From assembly GCA_003427395.1 (NCBI GenBank), contig BFEA01000019.1:337026-401025 (forward strand): DNA of 64,000 nt. The letters are read 5' to 3'. The DNA is from Chara braunii (taxonomy: Eukaryota > Plantae > Charophyceae). The first letter of the stretch is position 1; every line of letters begins with the position of its first letter. Of the stretch, positions 18,348 through 64,000 are shown piece by piece. The notes beneath the pieces are model-generated. The model searched no databases. It saw only the letters and a program-made list of their open reading frames with translations, and was not told the origin of the DNA. The position numbers and the translations under genes were made by a program.

Positions 18348-18952
18348 TCACGGTGGCAGTCTAGAGCGTCAGGAGCATCTGCGAGTGGCGGGAGGGGTGT
18401 AGAGGGTTGTTGGGGAGGGGTGTTCAAGTTGAGGAACGTTGGGGAAGGGTGTTGAGGGGTGTAGGGGAGGGGTGCTGAGGGGTGCAGGGCAGGGTGTTAA
18501 GGGATGGAGGGGGGGTGGCGGTATGTTGAGGGATTTTGGGCAGGGGTGCAGGGGATGGGTGTGTTGATCGCTGTAGGGGAGGGATGTTCATGGGTGTAGA
18601 GGCGTAGAGGGGTGTTTTTTTTTTGGGTTGTTTTCGGAGTGGGGGGGCCTTAGTCCTCATCATCCGCAACCCCCCACCCCTCGCGCGTTTGTCAAAAGCG
18701 GGTGAGACGGAGTCACGGAGGGGAAAAGAGGTAGAACGGGGTTAGAGCGTGGGTAGGGGGGGTTAGAGCGGCGCTCTAACAGCGCCCTACTACCCCGCTC
18801 TGCCCGTCTTTCCCCACTTCCTAAGTTCCTAGCTCCATGCTAAACTTTCTGGTACATATTTGTGATCCAGTAAAATTGACGATTATATTTTTTGTTTACA
18901 TTCTTTGCTGCTTTGGGTAATGTTTCCTCCATGTCGCTGCCGGACACTGCGT

Positions 18953-20637
18953 ATGTTTTTCTTTTTCTGCAGCACTGTGTGTGAGCTTTGAAGCTCTCGT
19001 TTGCGATCATCTTGATCATAGTTGCCGATCTCCGAGCTTCTGCTGCGAATGCATCGAGTTTGCTGCCACCTGATCCAATTTTGCAAATTGGAAAAGCCAA
19101 GACTACACACAAGAATGGACAACACGATCGACGGGGAGTTGAAGTCGTTTCATCGGTTCGTCAAGCTGAGCTGAGAGAGGATCGCCGACTGGAGTTGGCT
19201 GAAGTACATGACAAACTGTCCGGTGATGACAACGGTGAAGGGAGGATGGTAGACTCCGGCCATGCCGCATCCCATCTGCTCAGAGAGGGTACGGAGCGCA
19301 GAGTTCTAAGGACTCATACAAGTTATCTCAGACGCACACGCCCTCTCCGAACTCTGGCTTGGATAAGTTGGATTGACCCACCAAACTCAAACTCATCTGC
19401 TCAGGGGATGAACAAGCTTGCTGTCGGTGTTATGCAGGCAATCAACAGTAAGACGAATTTCAGTGCGAATGGCAGTGCAAATGGAAGTACAAATGTGGTG
19501 TTTTCTCCCCTTAGTGTGTTTACAGTGCTAGCTATGTTGAGTGGGGGTGCGGAGGGCAACACTCTGTCTCAGCTTTTGACAGCACTGAATGCATCCGATG
19601 TTTATCAGCTGAGTGATGGCGTGGGACGCATGCTGTTGCGGGCTGCCGATGATAGCACTGCAAGCCAAGGTGAAGGGGGCCAGAGAACAATGCTGTGTGA
19701 GTTAGCGAACAATCTGTGGGTTCAGAATAGGTTCCCTCTCACGGACCGCTTCGTCAACCTTACAAATTCAACGTACCATGCGGTTCCGCAGGTCGTCGAC
19801 TTTTCTGTCGATGCAGACGCCATTCGTCAGACAATCAATGCTTGGGTTTCAAAAGTCACACATGGTAAGATTTTAGACCTTCTCCCTGTTGGTTCCTTGG
19901 GTAGCGTGACACGAGTGGTACTTGCAAATGCTCTCTATTTTAAAGCTGTGTGGGCTGACAAGTTCAACCAATCATTGATGGAGCCCGGCCCGTTCATGCT
20001 ATCCAGTCAAACTTCGGTTGATGTCCCAATGATGAAGATGAAGGATCTGCAAGGGTCTGTGCACAGCATGTGAAACAAAGAGGGATCGGCAGGGAACTTC
20101 TCTGTGCTGCGGCTACCATATAGAGTGGGGATGGAGAATGAAGGGGTGGGTACGTCGGGGTGGGCGATGTATATATTCCTCCCAGAGAGAGTCGATGGCC
20201 TCGCTGACCTCGTTGCGGAGCTCACTCCTGAGCAGTTGAGCACGTGTCTTTCAATTAGCTCGAGCATAGACAGTGAGGTTTGGATCTCCGAGCTTAGGAT
20301 GCCCCGATTCCGTCTGACGTCAGACACGCTGCTTCTAAGTGATGCCCTTAAGTCAATGGGGATTGTGGATGCATTTGACCCATTGTCTGCAAACTTTACA
20401 GCCATGGCGAACGCCGCTGAATCACCCTACGTGTTAGAAGTATACCACAAAGCTTACGTGGAAGTCAACGAGGAAGGCTCAGAGGCAGCGGCTGCAACGG
20501 CTGTTGGGCTCTTAGGCGCCGGACCTCCTCCCCATACCTTTGTCTCGTTCATCGCCGATCATCCATTTTTGTTCATCATTCAAGACCCTTTAGGAAACAT
20601 CATCATTTTGGGACAGGTCCAGAACCCAACCCTGTAG
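18953..20637 (+). pseudogene. Serpin pseudogene, paralogue of 35779-37443
   Basis: NVVFSPLS, LANALYFKAVW, EVNEEGSEAAAAT and DHPFLF motifs; ATG 18953 out of frame; TGA at 18982 (Trp in paralogue) and at 20071 (Cys in paralogue). Confidence 0.9.
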
Positions 20638-26567: not shown

Positions 26568-28154
26568 ATGTCGTCCCACGGTGTTGGACGCGGCAAGTCC
26601 GGCATGAACAAGGCAGTGGAAGCGGCGGGAAGGGAGAAAAAGGGTCGTCACACCGTCAACAGGAAGAGGAAGGTCATCCAAGGCGGGCCTTCTGTTGCAG
26701 GTTATAACGAAGATGACGAGTGGGTGGGGGAGGGGGTGGCGACGCAGGAGGAAAGCGACTTCCAAGAAGAGGAGGAAGTGTTGTTGAAGAGGAGGTTTTT
26801 CAGGAGGACGGGTGAAGGCATCCAAATCGAAGAGGGGGGCTATGAGGGTGGCGAAAGACGAGGCGGAGGAGGCCGTGCAGTCATGGAAGACGCCATTGAC
26901 GTCGACGCCGCGACGGCATCCAGGGAGGGCGTGGCAGGTGCCATCGCACAGCAAATGCACACGCCTGTGCCGCGTTTGAATGACACCCCGACCACACATG
27001 AGCCTGCTGTCCGCGCACGAACACCAACAACCTCACGGTCGATGACGGTTGCAGATGTTGGCGGCACTTTGCAAGCCATCGGTCAGGGGAATAGGAACTG
27101 CTGTCCTGAGCAGGAGGCGCACGGGCCCGCAACGGGGGGGAATTCACACGCGGGGGAAGGCGTGAGGGCAGGAGCCATATTAGGGGGGGCTTCACACGCA
27201 GGGGAAGGCGCGAGGGCAGGGGCTGCAGCGGGGGTGGCTTCACACGCAGGGGAAGGCGCAAGGGCAGGCGATGTCGCCGGAGTAGGGGAGGACGACGAAG
27301 CGCTGGTGAACAAGGTGCGACAACATAACACGCGGGATGGAATGGAGGCGGCGACGAAACACTGGGCGGACGACCTTCGCTTCTGGAACGAAACCGAAGG
27401 GAACGCCATAGTAAAGTTGATACAGGAAGCGAGCCCGCATCTTGTGGCGGTGGCATGGGGAGTGCAGTGTCCGCCCGTTCGTCGAAGCATTGTCTTGCCT
27501 CATACCACCATCCCGCAACACAAAATCGAGGACAAAACGGAGTTGAACGCTGCCAAGGAAAAGGGCGCTGAAGGTGCAGACCACTTTGCGGGTGATCCAT
27601 GGGTGGGTCTTCAAGTCAGCGAGCAGGCAACGAGGGTACCACGCTTCGTACGGGTACGAGCTGAACAACGCTGCCACTGACATCGCTCGAGCGATCTGGA
27701 TGGGGGAGGACTGGCGTATAAGTGTGAGCCCCATGGTCTTCCATAGTACTCTGGACATGGATATGAAGTTGCCACTGTGGTTCGTCGCCACCGAAATCGA
27801 GGACAGGCACGAGGACAACGAGTTGGCGTCGTATCAGGAGGCGAGCATCCAGCGACTGGTGGGGGCTTTCACGAGAGCCGTGAGCATGGCGGAGGGGGTC
27901 GACGACTGGCGGGTGTCCTACGAAAGGTTGAAGAGCATTGCCGACACGATGAGGATCATGCTCGCGGCAACCATGTGGTTCATTACGACGCGTGGCTTTT
28001 TGTCCAACTAACAACGAAGCCAATGTTCATCGCATCCATGCATTGCTCATTCAACATGCGTCGCAATATCCTTCAAGCTGCGATCGTCATCATGGACAAG
28101 TTGGCGAGACCCCCCATGACTTTGGTGGACCCTCCGTTATATATCCCCGACTAG
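26568..28154 (+). pseudogene. Frameshifted TE-associated protein of unknown function
   Basis: Consecutive overlapping ORFs 26568-27680, 27574-28011 and 27777-28154; internal 20-aa repeats ASHAGEGARAG. Confidence 0.55.
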
Positions 28155-29083: not shown

Positions 29084-30768
29084 TTGGTTGGCTGATCTTT
29101 TTCAAATTACAGCAAGGGAAGTACTCAATGCAATATACGTGAACCATGGGTGGATTCTGTGTGCATAAATCGAGAAATGGGGCCTCGCTCCACTACTCTC
29201 CAAATGTGCAAAACGAGAGTGAATCTTCCGCTAGAACGTGCAAGAGAAGAGAAAAAACAAAAGAAAACACAAACTTTTAAATTTTGCGCAAATCAAAATT
29301 TTCAGAAACAAAGAAAATGACCAAGTAAAAAGAGAAAATTTTGTCAATACTTCGGTACCCCCAAGGGATCAAACTGTGCTTGAAAAAGAAACTCAGGCAG
29401 AGAAAATTTCGGCAACACGTCATTACCCCCAAGGGGTCAAGCTGTCCGCCAACAACAAGAATGGCTGTCCTAAAAAGATTTGAGGGTGCCACAAAGAAGT
29501 TTGGATAAGCAGGAAAAAAAAAAATCAAGAAAATGAAAAAGAAGGATTAATAAAACAATTCGAAATTTTCGAAAGAAAAAGAAAAAGAAATCAAAGAGAA
29601 ACACAAAATAAGAAAATGAGAAAATTTGGAAGTTGGTGGAGAGGGATGAAAAAGTAGTGAGAAAAGAGAGGGAGAGGTGTGAAATTGAAAACTTTTGAGG
29701 TGGTAGTTACGGGGGGGATAGTTGGCGGAAGAAAAGAGGGAAGGAGGGTGGGCGAATGAGAGAGAAAATTATGGAAAAGATGGAGAGTAAAGTAAGAGAT
29801 TAGTAGAAGAGGGTGAGTGAGGAGAAGAGAAAAAAACATGGTGGAAAATGAGTGAAAAGTGAGGGATATGAGAGAGCGGTTAGGAGGAGGAGAGAGAAGT
29901 GAAGAAAAAAGGAGAGGCCAGTGATAAAAGGTGATGATGAGAGGATGTGGGGGAGAAAGAGAAAAGGATGGGAGGGAAGTTTATTAATACGTATAGGGTT
30001 GTTACCGAGCTCTTGGGTGGCCAAGAGTAGAAAAAATCACCAAGATCCACAAGATCTTGGGCTTCACACACCTTCAAGATGATGATGAACTGTTGCTGCA
30101 GCAGTTGGATCTGATTGGATGGATCAGATCTGCAGATTTAAAAAATATTTATCTGGGGTAGGCTGAGACCCTGATCAGCAACGCAGTTCTCCCTGTACTG
30201 CAGCCCCCTAACCAGAGGGGGTCTTTAAACGCCTTAAACAAGCTGCCATGTGGCACTGCAGATGGCGATGTGCGCGAGGGAAGCAGCAGCCACGGTGTGG
30301 GGGGTGGGAAGGGGGGACAAATAGTAGCCCACCTGCCGCCGCCGTGTTGCTCGCTGCTCGCTGCTCATCGAAAGAGGGGGGGGAGGGGGGAGGGGGGAGG
30401 GGGGGTAAATAGCTGGTGTGGCACTCTACAATAGTGTCGTGCCACACTCCCAACTCTTGTTTAGACTTTGGCCAGTTTGTTAAGGCACTGGCTATGCCTG
30501 CCCATGAACCGGTGCTGCCCAGGTTCAGGTTCAGACTCTGGCAACAACATACCAGATCTTGATTGATATATATCTAGGAGCGAGGTGGGGCAGCAGGGTG
30601 TGGGCATGCATGTGTACGACATTGTTGGCACATGCGCATGTGTGCCATGTGTGAGATCTTTTCTCCCCTGACATGTGCTCTTCCCTTGCGCTGGTGTCTG
30701 CACATTTCTCCGACCATTTTCGTGTTCGCAGCTCCGAAATGCGTCGAAATCCCACTGTTCGGGATTTG

Positions 30769-31048
30769 CCCGTTCATGACGGAGTGGGATGGGTGGGAGT
30801 GGGGAACATTCCCGCTCTGATACCAATGTGACGGACCCATCGGGATTGCGGTCCCGTCAGTGTCCAGAAAAGGGGTGAGGATGAAGGAGATGGTGCAGCG
30901 GGAAGGGTTGCCCGTTCATGACGGAGTGGGATGGGTGGGAGCAGGGAATGTTCCCGCTCTAATACCAGTGTGATGGACCCGTCGGGATGGCGTTCCCGTC
31001 AGTGTCCAGACAAGGGGTGAGGATGGAGGGGATGGTGGAGCGGGAAGG
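30769..31048 (-). repeat. Tandem duplication (~142 bp) of an LTR-end/PBS junction
   Basis: gctctgatacca+atgtgacgg at ~30814 and gctctaatacca+gtgtgatgg at ~30956. Confidence 0.7.
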
Positions 31049-31727
31049 GACAGCGCACCACCGACGCAAACTCAACACACACATAGACGCAGACTCAACA
31101 CGCGCATACTCCAAGATGTGCAAATGAAAACACAGACTGCAGATGGAGTATACCCCCAGCAGACTGACTGGAATGGACTGGACTGGACTGGTACTGATAG
31201 TGGTACCGGACAAGAATGAAGTGAATACTCACATGGCCTGTGGGGCCAGGCCAACAGCCTGGTCCCACAGGTCCATTTCAGACCAAACGGACAAATAGCC
31301 AAATAGCCCTGGCTGTAGGCCAGGGCAGATGGAGGCCTGCTGCAGTTATCATACATTGTCAAGATGCACCCATCATTACACAAACGGCCCAAACAAGACA
31401 ACCTACTATAATACTGTCAGGAGATCCCTTTCCAACAAGTTGGGTGCATTCTTTGAAAACAGGAAAAAAGAAAAAAACAGGGTATTCTTTGAAGTTTGGG
31501 CTCCGACCGCTCAGCTGACAGTCAATCCTTCCAAATGAAGTAATCTCCACAGTCAGTAGTAGTGGAGGTGGAGAGTAGAAATGTTTCCAATCGGATGAAT
31601 TTGGGCGCTCTTGTAGTGGCCCGTACGTTTCCTAACACCGTGGCTTGTATACGGGTACTACTTCAGGAAGTACTGGTGGTTTAACAGAAAAATTGAGACA
31701 ATAAGGTTCTTCAAAAATGAAAAAGGG

Positions 31728-33989: not shown

Positions 33990-34330
33990 CCCGCATTCCA
34001 CCCACAAATTCCCCCAAGCAGCTCCATCATATGAAGAACCTCTGAAACCTGTCACTCCCCCCCATACCACTGCGCCTCCACCATGGCCGGGGGCGGAGGT
34101 GGGAAGAGCTCAGGGAACTTGGAGAGGGGGTGGAGTGGGCTGGAGGGATGTATCCTTGTCCAAATTGAATCATGAAACAAGAGGTGATAGTCCCTCTCTC
34201 CTTCCTCCAGGTCCTCTGAATTCCCCCTCCCCTCTCCCTTCCATTCCACATTTGCAATCCAGCCCCCTTGTTTCCTCCCCCAGCCAGTCTTTGCTTATTC
34301 CTCACTGGGCGTTAGACTCTAGGTTTGGTA
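33990..34330 (-). mobile_element. LINE ORF2 C-terminal remnant
   Basis: Translation ends FPELFPPPPP...WYGGE*, like the WYGGE* end of the 32039 ORF. Confidence 0.6.
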
Positions 34331-35778: not shown

Positions 35779-37443
35779 CTACAGGCTTGGGTTCTGAACC
35801 TGTCCCATGATGATGATGTTTCCTAAAGGGTCTTGAATGATGAACAAAAATGGATGATCAACAATGAATGAAACAGAGATGACCGGAGGACCTGCGGCTA
35901 AGGTGCTCACAATTATACTCGTTGCAGCTGCTGCCTCTGACCCCTCCTCGTTGACTTCCACGTAAGCTTTGTGGTATACTTCTGACACAAATAGTGATTC
36001 CGTGGAATTCGTCATCGCTGCAAAGTTTGCAGACAATGGGTCAAATGCATCCACAATCCCCATTGACTTAAAGGTATCACTTAGAAGCAAAGCATCTGAC
36101 GTCAGACGGAATCGTGGCATCCTCAGCTCGGAAATCCAGACCTCACTGTCTAGGCTTGAGCTAATTGAAAGACACGTGCTCAACTGCTCAGGAGTGAGCT
36201 CCGCTACGAGGTCAGCGAGGCCATCGACTCTCTCCGGGAGGAATATATACATGTCCCACCCTGACATACCCACTCCTTGAAGTTCGTTCTCCGTCCCCAC
36301 TCTATATGGTAGCCGCAGCACAGAGAAGGTCCCTGCCGATCCCTCTTTGTTGCACATGCTGTGCACCGACCCATGCAGGTCCTTCATCTTCATCATTGGG
36401 ACATCAACCGAAGTTTGACTGGATAGCATGAACGGCCCGGGCTCCGTCAATGATTGGTTGAACTTGTCGGCCCACACAGCTTTAAAATAGAGAGCATTTG
36501 CAAGTACCACTCGTGTCAAGCTACTCAAGGAACCAACAGGGAGAAGGTCTAAAATCTTACCATGTGTGACGTTTGAAACCCAAGCATTGATCGTCTGACG
36601 AATGGCCTCTGCATCGACAGAGAAGTCGACGACCTGCGGAACCGCATGGTACGTTGAATTTGTAAGGTTGACGAAGCGGTCAGTGAGAGGGAATCTGTTC
36701 TGAACCCACAGATTGTTCGCTAACTCAAACAGCATTGTTCTCTGGCCCCCTTTACCTTGGCTTGCATTGCTATCATTGGCAGCCTGCAACAGCATGCGTC
36801 CCACAGCATCACTCAGCTGATAAACATCGGATGCATTCAATGCTGTCAAAAGCTGCGACAGTGTGTTGCCGTCCACACCCCCGCTCAACATAGCTAGCAC
36901 TGTAAACACGCTAAGAGGAGAAAACACCACATTTGTACTTCCATTTGCACTGAAATTTGTTTTACTGTTGATAGCCTGCACCATACTGACCGCAAGCTTC
37001 GTCATCCCCCGAGCAGTAAGTGTTGAGCTTGAGTTTGGAGGGTCAAGCGAAGCCAAGGTTCGGAGAGGACGAGTGGGTCTGCGATAACTTGCGTGTGTTC
37101 TTAGTTCTCTGTGCTTCGTACCCTCTCTGAACAGATGGGATGCAGCATGCCCGGAGTCTACCATCCGTCCTTCACCGTTGTCATCACTGGACAGTTTGTC
37201 ATATACTTCAGCCAACTCCATTCGGCGACCCTCTCTCAACTCAGGCCGATGAACCCATGAAACCACTCCTTGTCGATCATGATGTCCATTCTCGTGTGTG
37301 GTCACATCTTTTCCAACTTGCAAAATTCGATCAGGTGGCAGGAAAAGTGATGCATTTGCTTCAGAAGCTTTGAGATTGGCAACCACAAGAATTATCACAA
37401 ACAAGAGCTTGAAGGCCCACACACAGTGCAGCAGAAGACCCAT
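35779..37443 (-). CDS. Secreted-type serpin, 554 aa, intronless, predicted inhibitory (P1-P1' approx. Leu-Ala)
   Basis: Hydrophobic N-terminus; NVVFSPLS, LANALYFKAVW, hinge EEGSEAAAAT, DHPFLFIIQD...GQVQNP; unbroken ORF. Confidence 0.92.
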   Translation of the reverse strand: MGLLLHCVWAFKLLFVIILVVANLKASEANASLFLPPDRILQVGKDVTTHENGHHDRQGVVSWVHRPELREGRRMELAEVYDKLSSDDNGEGRMVDSGHAASHLFREGTKHRELRTHASYRRPTRPLRTLASLDPPNSSSTLTARGMTKLAVSMVQAINSKTNFSANGSTNVVFSPLSVFTVLAMLSGGVDGNTLSQLLTALNASDVYQLSDAVGRMLLQAANDSNASQGKGGQRTMLFELANNLWVQNRFPLTDRFVNLTNSTYHAVPQVVDFSVDAEAIRQTINAWVSNVTHGKILDLLPVGSLSSLTRVVLANALYFKAVWADKFNQSLTEPGPFMLSSQTSVDVPMMKMKDLHGSVHSMCNKEGSAGTFSVLRLPYRVGTENELQGVGMSGWDMYIFLPERVDGLADLVAELTPEQLSTCLSISSSLDSEVWISELRMPRFRLTSDALLLSDTFKSMGIVDAFDPLSANFAAMTNSTESLFVSEVYHKAYVEVNEEGSEAAAATSIIVSTLAAGPPVISVSFIVDHPFLFIIQDPLGNIIIMGQVQNPSL

Positions 37444-37526
37444 ACAATGTGTCAGGCCGCAGAATCAATGAAACATTAACCAAGGCAGCCAAGAATGTCA
37501 ACCACAAATATATATATATATATATA

Positions 37527-38462
37527 TGAAACTCCGACGAAACAGTTTGTCACAGCCCCTTGTTTGTTGTCCTCTTCTCTCTCTCTGCCTACGGTTTACC
37601 GAACAGTTCTGTTTGTGACGATATATATATATTGTCACAAAGTTATCACTTCGTTTTTTTATCTTCTTGCTTACAATTCCCCCTGTTCAGAAGCTCTTGC
37701 GTACGAGGCCGCCCAAGTGGATGTAGGTAGAGCGGCGGCTGCCCCCAACCCCGTGTGTCATATCGACCCACTTGCACACATCCAAAGGGCAAAGAGGCAA
37801 AGAAAAGAGGAAGGAAACAGCTGAACACAACAAAACAGGGGGAAACAAATCCTAGATGACAAGTCCCACATGCAAGCACCGCCCCCACGTCACAGGCCAA
37901 ACGACGGGACAAGACCAACCAGGATATCAAAACACTTTGCCTGCAAAAACAGAAATCAATCTATTGCAACTACCGCCCCCTGTGCTGCCCGGTAAACCAT
38001 AGGCAGAGAGGGAGGGAGAAGAGGACAACGAACGAGGGGCTGTGGCAAACTGTTTCGTCGGAGTTTCACCGACTCATCAGGAGGCTGAACCCTATCCATC
38101 TGGTGTGGGTGAGTGATAGTCTACTTTGGTTTTGGTTAAGGTAGATTATCATTTACAGTGTACTCAGTGAGGGGATTCTGCAGACTGTTGAGGGTTCAGC
38201 CTCCTGATGAGTCGGTGAAACTCCGACGAAACAGTTTGTCACAGCCCCTCGTTTGTTGTCGTCTTCTCTCTCTCTGCCTACGGTTTACCGGGCAGTTCTG
38301 TTTGTGACGATATATATATATCCACGTGGGCGGCCTTGTACGCAAGAGGTTCTGAACAGGGGGAGTTGTAAGGAAGAAGATTAAAAACGAATTTAAGATT
38401 TTTTTGTTTTTTTTGGTTTTTTCGCTTAGGCGCTCTGATATCATGTGACAATATATATATAT
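37527..38462 (+). mobile_element. Retrozyme-like non-autonomous element cluster with hammerhead-bearing direct repeats
   Basis: Direct repeats 37527-37631 and 38216-38321 (689 nt apart); antisense copy 37985-38093; iMet-like PBS on - at 38432-38443. Confidence 0.7.
38169..38250 (+). ncRNA. Type III hammerhead ribozyme
   Basis: cagactGTT / stem I gagg-gttcag-cctc / CTGATGA / stem II gtcgg-tgaaact-ccgac / GAAAC agtttg (stem III); predicted cut after 38189. Confidence 0.9.
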
Positions 38463-39366
38463 NNNNNNNNNNNNNNNNNNNNNNNNNNNNNNNNNNNNNN
38501 NNNNNNNNNNNNNNNNNNNNNNNNNNNNNNNNNNNNNNNNNNNNNNNNNNNNNNNNNNNNNNNNNNNNNNNNNNNNNNNNNNNNNNNNNNNNNNNNNNNN
38601 NNNNNNNNNNNNNNNNNNNNNNNNNNNNNNNNNNNNNNNNNNNNNNNNNNNNNNNNNNNNNNNNNNNNNNNNNNNNNNNNNNNNNNNNNNNNNNNNNAAA
38701 AAAAAAAAAAAGTTTCCAAAAATTCTGAAAAAAAACTATGTCATGCAGAAGAATAAACTAAACAACATTTGCCTCAACAGTACATCCAAATGTCTTACCA
38801 AATTTGAAATAAAAATCAAATACGAAAAATAAATAATATTAATGAAAATAAGAAAAAATAAAACGAGAACGAAATTATTTGCGTGGGCGAGCAAGTTTTT
38901 GACACCGCCATCTTTGGCGATTGTTCATCTTTTTTTGGCTTTGTCAAATGCCATGAAATTTTATACATATGTATCTTACATCATAGAGAACCTAGAAATA
39001 AAGTTTGAAAAAATAATATTTTTTTTCAGGCCCCGAAATAAAGGGAAAACAAAAAGTGAAAAGAGAAAAAAAAAAATTAGTAAGTGGGAAAGCAAGTTTT
39101 GACACCACCATNTTTGCCGATTTTTCATTATTGTTTGGCTGCACAGAATGACTTCAAAATTGAGAGACAGGTAGCTTACATAACAGAGAACTCACAAAAA
39201 ACAAATCAGAAAAAAATAATAATTTTTAGGTACCAAAATAATTTCTTGCGGGGTCCGAACCCCTTCGAGTTCGGGCCCCGTACGGGGACCCGAACGCCCG
39301 AACGTTCGGGGGTCAGCTTAGGGGCCTCCGCACGTTCGGCCTGGCAACTCTATTTGACGATATATA

Positions 39367-39505
39367 GTCACAAACCCCTCGTTTGTTGTCCTCTTCTCTC
39401 TCTCTGCCTACGGTTTACCGGGCAGTTCTGTTTGTGACGATATATATATCTGTTTGTGACTATATATATATATATATATTTGACGATATATATATATATA
39501 TATAT
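39367..39505 (+). repeat. Further truncated copies of the hammerhead-element repeat end, separated by (TA)n
   Basis: cccctcgtttgttgtcc...cagttctgtttgtgacg(at)n, then shorter tgtttgtgac(ta)n and ttgacg(at)n. Confidence 0.8.
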
Positions 39506-39809
39506 GACCAATTGGCAAGCCCACAAAGATAGATCAGAAACATGGATGCAGAGTAGAAGCCAGTGTAGCATGATGAGGAAGCAGTCAAAAGGAAGAAGAA
39601 GGAAGAGAAAGCAAGTTACTGAAAGCCAGGGTAAATAGGCAAGGAGAGAAACTTCAAATTGGAAAAGTTGGAAAACTGTAACAGAAGGATGATGAGAAGC
39701 TGGAAAAGGAAAAGCACAGAATAGCAATGAAGTGCTGCTGCAGTGGTTCACTGGTGATTACCCGGCAGACTGCATGAAGATCGCAAACACTCTTAGACTA
39801 CTGTACTCC

Positions 39810-41499: not shown

Positions 41500-42130
41500 C
41501 TTTTCAAATGCTCAGAACCCCTAGACTCCCAAACAAAACTCTCTAAAATTATCCAACACTGTCTTATTCCCTGTCGGGCTCTCCCAGGCCTCACACTCCC
41601 ACTCGGCTAGGTAACAGAGCAACACGACTCGCCCCATCTCCGGCTAGCGTCGTCCCAACAGCAACCCTTGGTTGTCCCTTGGAATGCCCACCCCAAAGCA
41701 TCCCCAGATCTCTCTACCAGGCCTCATGCTCCTGCAGTCAGCACTTTACAGGGCAACACCCCAGCACCGGCCAGCGTCGTTCTGGCATCGAACAACCGCA
41801 GATCCATGAATGTACCAGTATCAAACAGCCTAAAGCGAGTTGCTAGAAGTCGCCAGAATCCTAAAGCATTCTCTTTTTTTTTTTTTGAGAGCATATACAG
41901 AAAAGTAAATAAATTGGGAGACCGGGACTTCAACCCGGCTCTGTCTGAAGAATAAGATCATGAGCAATTACTAGCCTATTCACTGAAGAGAAGTTTTAGA
42001 AGCAAAAATCACCATCACAAAGGTCCTATAAATGCCCAAAACCCTCGGAATCCCTAGCAAATCCTTCTAAAAGTCTCCAACACTGTCTTACTCCCTGCCG
42101 AGCTCTTCCAGGTCTCACACCCCCAACCCC
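41500..42130 (+). repeat. Dispersed repeat family (inverted relatives at ~56630-57000 and ~57280-57700)
   Basis: caacacgactc, aagcatccccagatctctct and acagggcaa motifs shared in reverse complement. Confidence 0.65.
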
Positions 42131-42699
42131 TTCGGAACACCATAACCCCTATTTCATGATTTTTTGGCCAAGAATTGGATTTTCATTTTCGCTCAGAAAA
42201 TATAAAATGTCCGTTCTGATGAAATCGCAGTCGTCTGGAAAAAAACCCGAAAACGAGTCATAACAGACCTGCTGGCCAGCGCTGGAGCAAGGTGGTGCAA
42301 CTCTGTAACCTAGCCTGATGGGAGCATGAGGCCTGGAAGAGCCTCGGTTCGTGCTGAAAACAGCCATGCTGGTGGTGGTCGCAGGTGGACTGAATAGGCT
42401 TCACCTATCTGATTCGTGGTTGGGAGGCTTGTTGACACACATTTTCTGAAGGTTTCTGAGTTTTCTGTTTTCTTCAATTGTTCTTAGCCGAGGCCGGGTA
42501 ATGGCCCCGGTAGCTCTTTTCTGTATTTTGATAAGGGACGCTGGGCCCGCTTCCCAGCCGTGTTGCTCCCCATGAATAGATTGGAGCATCGTCGCACTGC
42601 AAAAAAAAAAAAAAAAAAAAAAAAAACAGACCTTTAACAATCAACAATCATGACATATCATCTACTTGAGATCAATAATAATGATCTGGAATTACCTGG

Positions 42700-47561: not shown

Positions 47562-50500
47562 TTTTTTTTTTTTGCACACTCTCCCAACAGTGTTAGTGGT
47601 GCTGGTAAGAGCAGACACCACTAACACCTGTGGGGAGGCTCCATCTATTGGTGGGGAGCATCACCTGCTGGAAAACGGGTCCAGCGTCCCTTACACCGAA
47701 AAGTGAGAATGTTCGAGAACATTGAGAGCAGTGTCCGTGGCCCCTGCCAGCATTGATTCCCTTGCAACCCAGGGGATTGACTGAGCAGGTTTATATAGTG
47801 TTCTATTGCCATCTGTACCTCTTCACCCTTAAAAGAAGGGCGCCAGCTAAAGCAGTGAAGGGCTGGTACTATTTCCAGTCGGTGGCATGAACTAACTGTA
47901 ATTTAATCCTACGTTCCAGAGAACTATCTGGGGAGCCCTCTCTCAAATCAGATCTTTGTGACCTAATCAGATCTGTATTTCAGTGACATGGGATAGATCC
48001 TTAAACCCCTAAACCCCTAAAGCCTTTCCTCTCCCTGGTATCTGATACCCTAGCAGTATCGTTCCCCTTTCTTTGCTTAATTACCTCAATCCCTCCCATA
48101 CCATTCCAAACCCACCAAGCAGTTGGACCGGGGGGGGAAGGGATCGGGGAAATCTTCGCTGGGGTCTCATCGGGATTGCTGTATCGATCTTGGTCCACTC
48201 ATGAAAAAGGAGCCGGTAGTCTCTCGTTAGATTCTTTCGCCCTTGTCCCTCCCCTAGGTTCTTTTGTCTCCCTTGCCATTCCACCTTTCCAATCCTCCCC
48301 GCGTTATCCCCACCAAGCCAGCTAGGCTAAATTCCTTGATTTTTTGTTGGATATCCTTTTGTGAATGTAGTGATTGGATCCGAGCCTTAACCTTCTCCCA
48401 CTTTGCCCTTATTTCTGTTTGGATCTGTTGCTGTATGCTTTTCGTAAATTTTGGTCCTTCCAGTCTTGCTCTTTCCATTTCGTATGTGCAGCGTCGTCGC
48501 CAGAGGGCCCAGAGCACCGCTCGACGTCCCAGTTTGAACATATTGCTAGTGAAATCATTTAGTTGGTCTTTAGGCAAGGTTTTACATAGCGAGGCTTTCC
48601 AGTCCCACGGCCACTGGATCTGAGTTTCTGGTTGATCCCAGATTATGTCCCACCACCTCCACAACCACACCGCGACAGTGCATTGAAGAAATATATGTTC
48701 AATTGTTTCTTGCAATTTTCTGGATGGGAACGCGTTGGTGCAAAGCCTACACCAGGGCAGGGCGTGCCCTCTCTGCTCCAAGTTCGTTCTATCTATTAGC
48801 CAATCATTTGTCGGTAGGCAGCGGTGCTCGATATGCCACTGCAGTGAGGCAAATTTCACTGGTTTTTCCTTGATCGTTCCGAAGCACCTTATGTCTCTTA
48901 GCTTGTCCTTGTCGATGTTTAAGTGGTTCATCCAACGTGTCTCCACCCGGTTGTGAAGGTTTAATTTCGGCCTTAGGAGCCTGTAGGTCGATTTTACTGT
49001 TAGGCCGTATAATGATCTAGTAAGTTTTTTGCCCTTTCCTGCTGGGGTTGTTCATGCCCATTCTATCGGGTCCAGGGCGAGTTGGTGGATCGGAGGTAGG
49101 CGATCTATTGCTTTCTTTCATGAAGCACTCTAATTTTGGACAGATCCTCCTTTTGGCAAATAATTGTTTGTTCTGGAGAGTTTTTTTGAAGGACGTTATT
49201 CCAACTTATTTGGAAGAGGTTCACTCTTATTGATCCGTTGGGCTCACAGTAGACAATGTTGCCCACCTCACTTGGTCGATCCCTCAATGCCACCCAGTCC
49301 AATTCCTGCAGGGTGGGGCCTTTCCTTAGGATTCTCCACCAGGCTAGAAATATTTTTTATTATTATTGTTTCCAAGGCTACCTCTGGTCGATGGTTGTGG
49401 CTTAGTCTCTCTCTTAGCTGGTCCGGGTCAATCCAGTTTCTCTTTCCATATCTCATATGTCTTTTATCCTTGTTATTCCTCGTCTGACCCAGTCTTGCCA
49501 TGGAGAGTCCACGCAATGGAGGGTTTGTCCCTTCGAGTCTGCTACCCATCTATTGCCAGAAAGGGGTTGTCGTGCTACCTCTTCTCATCTCTCTGGTGGA
49601 GTTTTATCTGGTAGGGGCAGACTTCTCCATATTTTTAGAAGGTCAGTCCAGAAGGGGTCATTGCGTAAATCGACCCTTGCTGCTTGTCTGGGTGAGTCTG
49701 GGGGGGGACAGCGATGTTGCGCACCTCCTCTTGGGATGGGCCATCCGCTATTTTCCAGCCACATCAACGGGTCACTCTTCTCAACTGTTTGTGGTGCTAA
49801 GCGGGTAATCTGTTCTAGAACTAACCCCCTCTATGGTGATTCTAGATTGAAAAGTAGACATTTGAGTCATTGGATTGCTAGTGCTTTAGTTTGTATTGAA
49901 GGATCGATAATGCCTAATCCACCTTTCAATTTGGGTTGGATTATAGATTGTCAAGCCACTCAGTTGATCACGTTGCGTTTCTCATGATTTCTTTTCCACA
50001 GGAAGGCAGCTCCCTCACGCTGCAAGGGGCGAAGGGCGTTTTTGTATAATGCCCAGATAACCTGATTTATACCAGAGGGAGGCCAATACCACATTATTAA
50101 GTATTAGGGAATGTCCAATCAGTGAGGTATGTTTGTCCTTCCAGAGTGTCATTTTTTCCAAGGGTGGGCTAGAGATCCATTCATTGTTAGTAGACGACCT
50201 GCCTTCTGCTGACATCAACACCCCAAGTACTCTAATGGGGGGCTCCTTTGGAAGTCATTTGAGCCTAGGTTCTTCTGGGGGTCTCACTCCTTGGTGGTGT
50301 ATCCATCAGCCTCGGGTTTTGTTTCCCCAGTTGACCTTCATGTCAGACATTCTACAGAAACGGTCCATCATGTGTTGGACCTCTGCCATCGATTCATGGG
50401 AAGCTTCGATCATTAAAGTCAAGTCATCAGCAAACAATGAACACACTGGAATTGCCTCCTGGGGTATTGAAGACACTTCGATTTTCTTGATATTCTTATG

Positions 50501-50950
50501 TCTTCTCAGGTTGGCTGTCAGTGCTTCCATAACTATGACGAACAGGTAAGGGGCTATAGGGTCACCTTGTCTGTCCGACCTTTGGTGAGTAATGGGCGGG
50601 GCTAGATTCCCATTCATCATGACTCTAGTTGTCGCGTTCGTGTGTAGGATCTTCACCCAACGTCTGAAGCACGACCCAAAGTTAAGCTTCTCCAGGAATT
50701 TTTCTAGGAACAACCAGTCTACATGGTCATATGCCTTCTCAAAGTCAATGAAAATGATCGCTGCATTGTGTTTAGATTGTCTGGTTAGCTTTGATCATTT
50801 CATTTACCAATGGGATATTGTCCTGGATGTTCCGGCCTTAAATAAACCCAGTTTGGTCGGGGTGTATAATATCGGTCATGAATGGTACCAGGCGGTTAAC
50901 CAGGGCTTTAGCCATTAATTTGTATACAAATGTGAGCAGTGTGACTCAGG
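47562..50950 (-). mobile_element. Degenerate L1/Tx1-like LINE: RT domain, zf-RVT, 3' UTR and poly(A)
   Basis: IDFEKAYDHV, RQGDPIAPYLF, LFADDL (50306-50760); WHIEHRCLPT...ETIEHIFLQC; poly-T 47562-47573 on +. Confidence 0.92.
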
Positions 50951-60325: not shown

Positions 60326-63300
60326 TATGGACAACCCTGGAAGCCGTAGCCGGCGGGGGCAAAGAGGAATGGGCCCCCTCATCTACTACCAGGGGGCGAT
60401 AAGGCATAACCCGCTCAGGCAGCTGGCAGTCCCCCCATACGGACGGCCCGTGTTGCAAAAGGCCCCCGCAGCCACTCAGGGCCAACCGCCACACCCGCCC
60501 GTATTCCGATCCGACCAGCACTGCTGGCCGGGACTAACAGACCAACGGGAACAACGGCCCACCCGAGCACACAAAATTACCCCAGAGGCGGATCCGGCTT
60601 CTCGGACCCCTGGCTCAGATTAGAAGGGGGTAGATCGCGGGGAGGACGAGAAGGAGACGGAGCTGAAGAGGGGTGGGAAGGAGGTGGAGATGGAGGATGA
60701 TAGCGGAAGTGAGAAAGAGGAGGAAGAGGAGGAGGAGAATGAGGAGGAGAATGNGGAAGAAGATGACGAAATGTTGACCGAGGAAGAACAGCTCCAACAG
60801 AAAGACAGACAACAGCAGCAGCCTGGGACAGAACAAGGAAAAAAAGGAAAAGAGGAATCGAGACCCACATGGGCCCAGCGTGTCAGGGCAACGATTCATG
60901 AGAAATCCCTCGATATCCGGAGGGCCTCTCCGAACTCGCAACAGGGGAACGAAGAAACCCTGAAAGTTCCTCTTCGCAACCTTTCGTCAGCACGTGCTTA
61001 CTTTTTGACCCTCTTCCTCCTTCCCTATGAGAACCAGGTAGTAGATCAGGGGGGGAGGAGAACAATGATGAAGGTATACCCCCCTGACAAACTGGAGGTA
61101 AGAGACAAAACGTACTACCAACACGCAAGCAACTGGCTCTTCCTGGGTGACGTGACACAAAGATCGATCAATGACAAAATAAAATGGATACACAAGAAAT
61201 TGGAGGAGATGAAAGGCAATCCGGACGCGGTTCAGGAATTTTTCCTAATTCAACCGCTCTCCTCCACGGTTTTCACCATCCTTAGTCTCTTCACAGAAGA
61301 CAAACAGAAGATGGACATGTGGCGGTCAATAAAATGGGAGCATTCGGAGGTGCGGATCTACCCGTGGCAACCCAAGAAGGTAACCCCGGAAGAAAGGAGG
61401 GAACAGTTGATGAAAGACCACCACTGGGTCGAATTTAGACATATCCCGGTGGAAATCCAGGCCACCTTCGTGCACGACTTTGGGCAACAATACAACATTG
61501 TCGACTTCATCGACCCTCTCCCGTCCTATGTGGCAAGGCGTGACGATTATCTAATGCTGGCGCTGGATCTATCGAAAGACCAGCCTTTCTCGATAGACGA
61601 CATCATACCTTACAGAATGGGGGGGAGGGTCTTCCAAATCCACACAGCCCACAAATTTCGCCCATGGTGCTTCAAATGTAGGGCATATGGGCACTTGAGT
61701 ACGGAGGTTGCCTGTCCCTACCACCCAAGCAACAGAGGCCCGCCGACGACCCGTCTTAGACAGGACCAACGGCGGCCCAACAGATGGTACACAGTAAACC
61801 AGGGACACAAAGGGTGGGTATACCTGACGGACCGAGACTTGACAGGACAGATAAAAGGCTGGACCTGGGAGGGGAGGGGAGCCCCCTGCTGAGCCACCAG
61901 GCCCCCCAACGATTGGTCCCCCCCCCAGATAGACCAGACTCAGCGGTCAGACAAGTCGGTGGAACCAGGGAGGTCATCCCCAAAGCCCTCGACCTCGCAA
62001 GGCCAAGAGGGTCAACCAAAAAAACCGCCCTGCCAGGTCCAGGAGCGACAAAATAAACAGTCTTGGGGCCCGCACGCAAAGAGATATCTTCCAATCGAGA
62101 AGAAAACAGAAGTGGAACCCCAAATACAACAACCCCCCGGTCCTCCGCCACCCCAAGGGAGTACGACCCACCCTGCACAGCCCTCCCAAAATGAGCATGC
62201 ATCCCCAACAGATGGGTCACAACAATCCAGTGCGGCAACGGACCCACTCCAAGATGCCTTCGGCCCCGCGCCGATGGACATTGAAATACTCCCCGGGGCA
62301 CCACCCCCACCCGAGGTGGAAATGACCGACGCTCAAGCTGCAAATACCGCCCAGCCCGCCACTGATGAGCAAAACGATCTACCAAATGATATACAAACAA
62401 CGGGAGACACACGGGGAATGGCCCTACAGGACGTAGCGGAGTGGTTAATGAAGAACCTCCGCCTGAAATATCCAAATGATAGTGAGGAGATGTGGGATGA
62501 TGTGTACAGAGACCTGGTAGCTTTGCTGGAAAGCAGCCCCAGCCTCCATTCCGCTTTGACCCGTGGCCTGCCAACAGGAGCGAGCTGGAACCAAATCCAC
62601 TACAAACTGTTGCACATAGTTCTCACCCGGTTCCAGTCCCCCTCGCCTGTGCAGACCTCGGGGGAAACAGTGAGACACACAAAGGAGGGTGGAACGGGTG
62701 GCCCCGCGGGAAGGAACCGGGACGGGTCTCACCAATGTAATGACGCCCTAGAAAATGGCTCCTCCCGGAACGGGGTGCAGCAGCCGGCCGATGCTGCAGA
62801 GCAGAACTCAAAAGTAAAAAACCCGGGCCCGGAAAACACCAGCGACAGGGCGGACCCGGGAGTAGAGAGAGAGGATTTGCAACATCCTCAAGACGTCCTG
62901 CAACACGACGGGACACACCCGGGAAACCAGACAGAAGCGCTCCCCGAACCGGGACAGTCCTGCGGCATAGAAAAAGGAAAAAATCCCCTCCTGAGAAGCA
63001 CTGACGCAGATGAGGGACAGACTCGAGGCACAGAAAATGAGAAAAATGAGAGAAATGGGAAGAGTCCCCTGCAAGGAAATACCAGTGTAGATGAGGGGGA
63101 ACCACAAGCTGAATCGAGGCCTATTGGCCAACCACACTCGGGCTTGGTACAGCCTGTGGAACAGGACAATGGGGCAGGCGGGCTATGCCTGGCATTGCCA
63201 GCCTGGGACTGTGCCTCGTCTGTACCCGAACCCGACCCTCCCGACCCCCCTCCCCCCCCGGAACCCCCTGCTGACACCCTCACCAGCAGGCGACAAAAAA

Positions 63301-63803
63301 TCCGTCACCTGCTGGAAAAGGCGTCCCAGTTCCAGCCCTCCAATAAGGGGGTGCTGCTTCTCCCAGTCAGGCGCGCACATGGAACATGGGAGATAGGCCT
63401 CTCCACCCCCCCCGAAGCGACTCACGGAGAGCTGTCCCTCCAGGGACGCTCATCCTATTTTCTATCCTTGACATCATGGGCCGACAATCTGACCTTCTGG
63501 AAACAGGACATTGTCAAGCTAATTCATGGCCTCCTTCCAGGGGGCGCTACGTCAGTCCTGGAGGTCTCCCACGGCCAGGACAGACTGACCGTCAGGGACA
63601 TCTACGTGCGATATGACCACCCGGACATGGAGGGACTGTGCTGGTTCCACAATGACGCCCTCCTGGACCTCCAGCTCCTCAAGATAAAGGCCGGCGACCT
63701 CTGGTTGGCAACGGAGGCAGAATCCTTCCTGGTAAACATACTCAGGAAAGGAACCCTGCAGAAGGGTGGTATCTTAGACACTGCAAAATGGATGGCCATA
63801 TAA
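60326..63803 (+). CDS. LINE ORF1 region (long, apparently frameshifted) with zinc knuckle
   Basis: RIYPWQP...WVEFRHIP...WCFKCRAYGHLSTEVAC in ORF 60684-61892, followed by ORF 61959-63803. Confidence 0.75.
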
Positions 63804-63874
63804 AAAAAAAAAAAAAACACAAAAAAAACAAAAACACAGAATAATTACAGAGAAGGGGGTGGTGAAATACAGCA

Positions 63875-64000
63875 ATGAATGTGGTCGACGCGCTTTTTGG
63901 TAGGGACAAAGCCTGGCAGCTTTGCAAACGACAGGCGGACTTGGACCTGCGCTCACTAAATGTCAATGGCCTGGCTTCCGCCAAAGCCCATAAAAGGCAG
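63875..64000 (+). CDS. Start of LINE ORF2 (APE endonuclease), runs off the window
   Basis: MNVVDALFG...DLRSLNVNGL, the typical endonuclease N-terminal motif. Confidence 0.8.
   Translation, partial: MNVVDALFGRDKAWQLCKRQADLDLRSLNVNGLASAKAHKRQ

Follow-up and report, generated by a model that had tools for sequence, protein, structure and literature searches.

A type III hammerhead motif in a family of small non-coding elements lodged in microsatellites of Chara braunii

Penelope-like elements are characterized by frequent 5′ truncation, partial tandems that act as pseudo-LTRs, an inverted 5′-truncated copy at the 5′ end, and hammerheads in the repeat or the 3′ region (Craig et al. 2021, PMC8557442). 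Their microsatellite targets are (TA)n for Naiad and Neptune and (CA)n and (C)n for Chlamys, and Chlamys-type elements with 3′ hammerheads, Chlamys-2_cBra along with PLE-X1_cBra, have been published for Chara braunii (PMC8557442). Complete retrozymes are known from dicots only (PMC11722881). The metazoan non-LTR retrozymes consist of head-to-tail tandem units of 170–400 nt with type I hammerheads, and among plant elements the SaTar, Micron, and MuTAnT MULE MITEs form modular arrays of short non-coding elements spaced by (TA)n (PMC5907723).

The DNA analyzed here, hereafter the window, is a 64,000-nt stretch of C. braunii, located through its serpin gene at BFEA01000019.1:337026–401025 of GCA_003427395.1, and positions without a prefix refer to it. 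Two further stretches of the same scaffold were included: L004, which covers 79 kb around a third serpin gene (CBR_g20349) ∼165 kb away, and L005, whose positions 1–22891 are the 22.9 kb past the right edge of the window. A serpin ORF at 35779–37443(−), recognized by Pfam, is 100% identical to C. braunii CBR_g20355, which bears out the view, first taken from the letters of the DNA, that the host is a streptophyte alga. The serpin gene model has further upstream exons ∼16 kb and ∼41 kb off. A (TA)n microsatellite (∼37509–39506) within the predicted first intron, immediately 5′ of the main coding exon, is crowded with eight or more pieces of a single element family, one of which contains a complete type III hammerhead motif.

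Comparing this family with the described systems, it is closest to the Chlamys-type elements of C. braunii. The two, compared by description, share the species, a hammerhead near the 3′ end, 5′ truncation, pseudo-LTR and inverted layouts, and insertion into microsatellites. Moreover, a sister family found nearby, termed K, has the (CA)n target reported for Chlamys and fits the published description closely. Unlike Chlamys, the family has no RT/GIY-YIG ORF beside any copy seen here, and its own target is (TA)n, as in Naiad and Neptune. With the angiosperm LTR retrozymes (Cervera et al. 2016, PMC4918200) it shares non-coding sequence, a type III hammerhead, a repeat spacing of several hundred nucleotides, and a tRNA-Met PBS-like motif after a ...CA terminus, whereas an LTR pair with two ribozymes and a 4-bp duplication are missing and the copies form a one-sided series with (TA)n-anchored ends. 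Like the metazoan non-LTR retrozymes and Penelope pseudo-LTR hammerheads (Cervera and de la Pena 2014, 2020; bioRxiv 10.64898/2026.07.22.740005), the family appears non-autonomous, derived from a Penelope-like repeat region, and able to form a highly structured RNA; in contrast to the metazoan units, it is dispersed in microsatellites, with one complete type III hammerhead per locus and a long helix III. Modular arrays of short non-coding pieces spaced by (TA)n are common to the Chara family and the MULE MITEs. The MITEs have long terminal inverted repeats and, outside microsatellites, 9–10 bp duplications, whereas the Chara family has inverted termini of at most 9 nt and is mostly truncated at one end.

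In a streptophyte alga, small, non-coding, 3′-anchored and microsatellite-targeted modules of at least two related families with different targets thus bear type III hammerheads whose helix III is long. As hammerhead-bearing Penelope-like elements of C. braunii have already been published, the locus is mainly a well-characterized example. It adds two unexplained details, a PBS-like motif and strand-asymmetric wobble pairs, and offers a concrete start for testing the descent of plant retrozyme ribozymes from Penelope-like 3′ modules.

The cluster is bounded on the left by a (TA)n run at 37509–37526, which abuts the serpin 5′ flank, and on the right by an (AT)n run at 39486–39506. Each piece terminates in TGTGACG, TGTGACA, or a shortened form of these, with (AT)n behind it. 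The number of TGACR+(AT)n ends in 1.9 kb is seven, compared with an expectation of 0.01. The leftmost piece, copy A (37527–37620(+)), is a 5′-truncated short-type copy ending in TGTGACG. The (AT)6 that follows (37621–37632) separates two element ends placed tail to tail, the second belonging to a long-type 3′ part (37633–37974(−)) that ends in TGTGACA beside the (AT)n. Read on the plus strand, this part opens with TGTCACA and continues with a decayed PBS-like 12-mer (37640–37651, 7/12). An inverted copy of the hammerhead and R region (37975–38093(−)) then forms the left arm of a long hairpin. It includes a defective ribozyme at 38047–38096 (26.8 bits), in which the 5′ strand of helix III is destroyed and unpaired, and together with copy C it provides 85-nt arms that are 94% complementary, the inverted arms as a whole lying at 37975–38093/38191–38300. 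Copy C consists of a region 5′ of the cleavage site (38094–38189(+)), with a 21-bp hairpin and the 5′ strand of helix III (38169–38189), and of the predicted 3′ cleavage product (38190–38309(+)), which is the right arm of the hairpin and ends in TGTGACG. It is followed by (AT)6 at 38310–38321 and by copy F3 (38322–38450(+)), a 5′-truncated long-type 3′ part that ends in TGTGACA and holds the complement of a PBS-like 12-mer at 38432–38443. Another (AT)6 and an assembly gap occupy 38451–38697, the gap itself (235 N, 38463–38697) falling within the cluster. Beyond an unrelated element, T (38698–39352(+)), whose start is lost in the gap, comes a series of 3′-end pieces (39353–39485(+)) that reads TTTGACG(AT)3, copy D (39367–39439(+), 73 nt), (AT)5, CTGTTTGTGAC(TA)n, and TTGACG(AT)n; besides copy D, it holds three pieces of 6–11 nt. 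The inverted copy, copy D, and these tiny pieces add to the copies that the sequence-only reading had listed.

That reading had described a hammerhead whose sequence recurs, 5′-truncated, 689 nt upstream. The direct repeat itself (37527–37632/38216–38321) holds, with 106 nt at 96% identity and a spacing of 689 nt, but its upstream member is not a second hammerhead: copy A starts at T37527/G37528, within ribozyme loop 2, so that cleavage site, helix I, and CUGAUGA box are all missing from it. With one complete ribozyme and an upstream repeat devoid of a cleavage site, the locus cannot give the ∼690-nt cleavage-to-cleavage RNA that had been proposed. The expectation of no recognizable protein was borne out, as a Pfam search of the longest 150 of the 192 stop-to-stop ORFs (≥90 aa) in the window found no protein in the cluster. 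Likewise, the long 3′ part holds a 94-aa ORF for which no match was obtained among 1.84 billion representatives, and the hammerhead-spanning ORF, used as a protein query for other copies, returned no candidates. Target-site duplications were looked for at the pieces and none was found; all are bounded by (TA)n.

The Rfam model RF00008 (Hammerhead_3) matches 38182–38237(+) over its full length with 45.8 bits (E = 1.3e-8 locally and 7.8e-7 over the whole window). The Rfam gathering score for this model is 48.5 bits, so that copy C falls 2.7 bits short, and an Rfam scan at gathering level gave no match for its hammerhead. The minimum-free-energy fold of 38160–38260 yields the hammerhead three-way junction, in agreement with the complete type III ribozyme and GUU triplet originally proposed. 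Helix I pairs 38190–93 with 38200–03 and is followed by the CUGAUGA box (38204–10), helix II (38211–15/38223–27), and GAAA (38228–31), while helix III (38181–87/38232–38) is lengthened by an outer stem (38169–74/38245–50). The cleavage triplet, GUU at 38187–38189, is permitted by the NUH rule for hammerhead cleavage triplets, and the cut is predicted between U38189 and G38190. CUGAUGA, GAAA, an NUH triplet, closed helices I and II, and an open helix III are all present, and by model and fold copy C contains a real type III hammerhead motif; it is predicted to be the sole piece at the locus able to self-cleave.

Exact-pattern scans with parts of the ribozyme proved uninformative. The scan with the helix II core yielded only two unrelated hammerheads, at L001:8195–8223 and L002:3461–3489, between ORFs of metagenome contigs of phage-like appearance. 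Their 29-nt core is identical to that of the Chara ribozyme, helix II and loop 2 included, which probably reflects convergence on the common UGAAA loop form. With the helix I pattern, a bacterial MAG gave a single chance match and viral contigs gave none.

At L005:4172–4226 there is a second type III hammerhead, which scores 40 bits and has GUC as its triplet. It belongs to the K family, which sits 44–50 kb to the right of the cluster on the same scaffold. K1 (L005:3977–4271), a 295-nt unit, contains this complete ribozyme, and K2 (L005:10182–10262) and K3 (L005:10470–10556), both 5′-truncated, lie just 3′ of serpin exon 1. All three are inserted in (CA)n and end ∼45–50 nt past the ribozyme GAAAC, flush against the repeat, and the family has neither inverted termini nor LTR features. 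The K ribozyme core is 84–88% identical to that of the window. When the hammerhead structure was imposed on the two complete copies, 97.6% of helix cells were paired, compared with 39–50% in slid controls, and three compensatory pairs distinguish the two families in outer helix III. With two sequences only, this pairing and covariation lend modest but consistent backing to a shared hammerhead structure.

Both complete ribozymes, those of copy C and K1, belong to long imperfect hairpins, in each case to the 3′ arm, K1 also having inverted arms. Of the transition differences between the K1 arms (L005:3977–4240), 12 give G.U and 1 gives A.C on the ribozyme-sense strand (p = 0.002). Similarly, the 21-bp hairpin upstream in copy C (38109–38129/38136–38156) has six G.U and zero A.C pairs on that strand. 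The sense strand folds 30–36 kcal/mol better than its complement. The G.U bias is absent in the outer arms of the window (2 to 1) and in two control pairs (3 to 3 each). Seen at two loci, the wobble asymmetry suggests that an RNA copied back into DNA was edited or under selection. We had also taken the start of the inverted copy at the cleavage site as a sign of cleavage in vivo; this was withdrawn because the inverted arm of K1 continues through the cleavage site and because the window arm also aligns through it if ∼19 nt of deletions are allowed.

Further copies of the window family occur in L004. Copy E1 (L004:33778–33888(+)) starts in helix I straight after (TA)n, and copy E2 (L004:33899–33962(−)) faces it tail to tail across (AT)5, a layout (L004:33778–33962) that mirrors the one around 37621–37632 of the window. 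One or two more copies lie near L004:6914–7170(−). In copy C numbering, short-type copies begin at or before 38094 (C), at 38199 (E1), at 38216/7 (A), and, in three or four copies, at 38235–38238 (E2, the copy near 7 kb of L004, and D). Despite these graded 5′ ends, the short-type copies, pieces of 6–11 nt included, have one common 3′ end. Overall, the common 3′ end recurs in at least ten pieces from three loci, and six or more different 5′ ends occur among them. At L004:33972–33981, the unrelated T element is likewise represented by a 10-nt piece between (AT)n runs, and such tiny pieces are therefore neither specific to reverse transcription nor proof of it.

We consider target-primed reverse transcription of a small non-coding hammerhead family by a Chlamys-type Penelope-like enzyme the probable origin of the cluster. 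A small non-coding retroelement whose type III hammerhead lies ∼120 nt short of the 3′ end would have struck the (TA)n microsatellite again and again, each copy being started at the 3′ end of the RNA, with nicked (TA)n as the target that primes reverse transcription. Such 3′-end-primed copying would leave constant TGTGAC(G/A)+(AT)n ends, while most 5′ ends would vary and be joined to (TA)n. The pieces may be 5′-truncated copies of a Penelope-like element, or they may constitute a derivative, itself non-autonomous, of that element's 3′ module. The 689-nt direct repeat would be a Penelope-style partial tandem, or pseudo-LTR, with truncated copy A ahead of a 678-bp unit (37633–38309), and the minus-strand inverted copy would be the head-to-head arm typical of Penelope-like elements. 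Cutting at 38189/38190 would free a 120-nt 3′ fragment bearing the reverse-transcriptase entry site, and in a tandem with two complete ribozymes cleavage would trim read-through transcripts to unit length.

The Penelope hallmarks found here are 5′ truncation with a constant 3′ end in both families, a partial tandem, an inverted copy, and microsatellite sites. A Penelope-derived, (TA)n-targeted element, held by the sequence-only reading as the alternative to an LTR retrozyme, is now favored by the fixed 3′ ends, the varied 5′ truncation, the tandem and inverted layouts, and the sister family in (CA)n; the family fits the hammerhead-bearing Penelope-like elements of C. braunii better than a plant-type LTR retrozyme. 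From architecture and the literature, we infer a link to a named Penelope-like family, of which it would be a member. Some results count against a Penelope-like origin. The (TA)n site of the family is not among the targets published for Chlamys. The 5′ ends at 38235–38238 start at the TGTCACA motif that mirrors the 3′ end, as would also be expected from a terminal inverted repeat. In addition, no Penelope-like ORF (RT + GIY-YIG) of an autonomous partner is present in ∼150 kb of C. braunii DNA (window, L004, and L005), where the only reverse-transcriptase-encoding elements seen are L1-like LINEs and one Ty3/gypsy element.

The Penelope-like explanation leaves the PBS-like motif of the long-type copies aside. 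Directly after TGTCACA, in the opposite-strand copy in which it had been noted before, TGATATCAGAGC at 38432–38443(−) does match the tRNA-iMet PBS at 11/12 positions. A match of this quality in this place is unlikely to be due to chance. Under the Penelope-like explanation the 12-mer is functionless, it is antisense to the ribozyme in long-type copies, and it is unexplained. A hybrid, in which a Penelope-type hammerhead module was joined to an LTR/TRIM-type leader with a ...CA terminus and a tRNA-Met PBS and the RNA was kept as a long rod-like hairpin by selection, with the one-sided G.U pairs of K1 and copy C as its mark, would accommodate it; we regard this as unlikely. If true, it would make the family an algal intermediate in the passage of Penelope-like hammerheads into land-plant LTR retrozymes and viroid-like RNAs, and partial tandems elsewhere in the genome with two intact ribozymes could yield circular RNA.

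Target-primed reverse transcription might also have been supplied by a LINE acting on a SINE-like parasite with a (TA)n tail. The 3′-anchored truncation series fits such a course equally, and no reverse-transcriptase genes other than those of L1-like LINEs (RVT_1 + zf-RVT) were seen close to the locus. However, the LINEs of the window do not end in (TA)n and have no (TA)n run of at least 5 units nearby, whereas the traits of Penelope-like elements include hammerheads, inverted 5′ arms, and the targeting of microsatellites (PMC8557442). The agreement of the K family with the published Chlamys target further makes a LINE-driven origin quite unlikely.

The sequence-only reading had preferred a retrozyme of the angiosperm kind. 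The pieces would then be remains of a degenerate LTR retrozyme whose hammerhead-bearing LTR ends in ...TGTGACG(AT)nTGTCACA, followed by a tRNA-Met PBS and a short non-coding core, and which uses Ty3/gypsy enzymes and a circular RNA. The ribozyme is of type III, as in plant retrozymes, one strand carries, in this order, the hammerhead part of copy A, (AT)n, TGTCACA, and the PBS, and the 689-nt spacing is inside the retrozyme range (PMC4918200). The 11/12 PBS straight after TGTCACA resembles the ...GTCACA-T-TGGTATCAGAGC junction at 30814(−), and a Ty3/gypsy element is nearby in the genome. The structure of the copies nevertheless argues against it. The upstream repeat has no ribozyme and is only 106 nt long, compared with LTRs of 300–400 nt; there is no LTR pair, and neither a 4-bp nor any other target-site duplication. 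The (AT)n ends of copies C, D, and E1, three of the four short-type copies, are not followed by TGTCACA or a PBS. Behind the (AT)5 of E1 there is a reversed element end in place of TGTCACA and PBS, which argues for the TGTCACA behind copy A being the terminus of another piece, in inverted orientation, rather than an LTR tip. All five extra fragments retain the 3′ part of the supposed LTR and none of the five its 5′ part, and the homologous K family ends in (CA)n without LTR features. A 19-nt purine run at 37799–37817 was considered as a PPT and judged uninformative, since purine or pyrimidine runs of ≥17 nt number 98 in the window, about one per 650 nt. Altogether, an LTR retrozyme is improbable here.

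A cut-and-paste MITE of the SaTar or Micron kind, targeted to (TA)n, with (T/C)GTCACA inverted-repeat ends and an incidental hammerhead, is very improbable. The 678-bp unit and the units of ∼73 nt (D, E2, and the copy near 7 kb of L004) do begin with (T/A)GTCACA, end in its complement, and are flanked by (TA)n; plants have modular, (TA)n-flanked arrays of unrelated elements (PMC5907723), and the unrelated inverted-repeat element T uses the same microsatellites. However, these inverted termini measure just 6–9 nt, compared with 40–250 nt in SaTars, and copies A, E1, and F3 each retain a single end, of unvarying polarity. Inverted termini are absent from the K family, whose site is (CA)n, and the G.U pairs on one strand only of the upstream hairpin point to an RNA stage. 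A Helitron reading, for which the AT target, 3′ hairpin, and 5′ truncation were considered, was dropped for want of a CTRR end. Finally, misjoining of short-read contigs at (AT)n, which the gap-rich scaffold and the 235-N gap inside the cluster might suggest, can hardly have produced the repeats and junctions, as the junction (AT)n runs are merely 12–19 nt, the flanking sequences are unique at each junction, and like junctions recur at independent loci ∼165 kb off.

PBS-Met-like sites also occur elsewhere in the window. There are five with at most one mismatch, all on the minus strand, compared with ∼0.3 by chance according to our estimate. The stretch 30766–31049(−) consists of two tandem 142-nt units, each with ...GTCACA followed by an exact or 11/12 tRNA-iMet PBS.

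Three serpin paralogues are present in this one scaffold (35782–37410 and 18991–20634 of the window and L004:67235–69001), and the serpin gene models have very long first introns of 16–59 kb, rich in repeats and gaps. An empty-site comparison with the flank of the paralogous serpin gave none, the homology stopping exactly at the (TA)n of the cluster's left edge. At the end of the flank homology 5′ of that paralogue, the window reads ...TTTGTGAT...TTGACGAT-TATAT (18860–18890), possibly an old vestige of this element's terminus beside a decayed (TA)n, older than the serpin duplication. U2 and U6 snRNA genes or pseudogenes are dispersed in the serpin introns (L004:45165–45339, 64283–64535, and 27813–27873; L005:10760–10873). 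L1-like LINEs (RVT_1 + zf-RVT) lie at 48254–50794(−) and at 60684–64000, the latter continuing to L005:18247–22932; one of them, almost complete, has ORFs of 927 and 617 aa, and a LINE ORF used as a protein query had no match. The Ty3/gypsy-type element, with integrase and RT domains, occupies L004:76441–79000(−) and runs off the end of that stretch.

The T element within the cluster is ∼730 bp long and non-coding, with GC-rich inverted termini (CAGGGT...ACCCTA), two internal repeats of ∼200 nt, and (TA)n on both sides. L004 contains a complete copy at 41583–42292 and another at 33997–∼34520. T looks like a microsatellite-targeted MITE that uses the same insertion sites as the hammerhead family.
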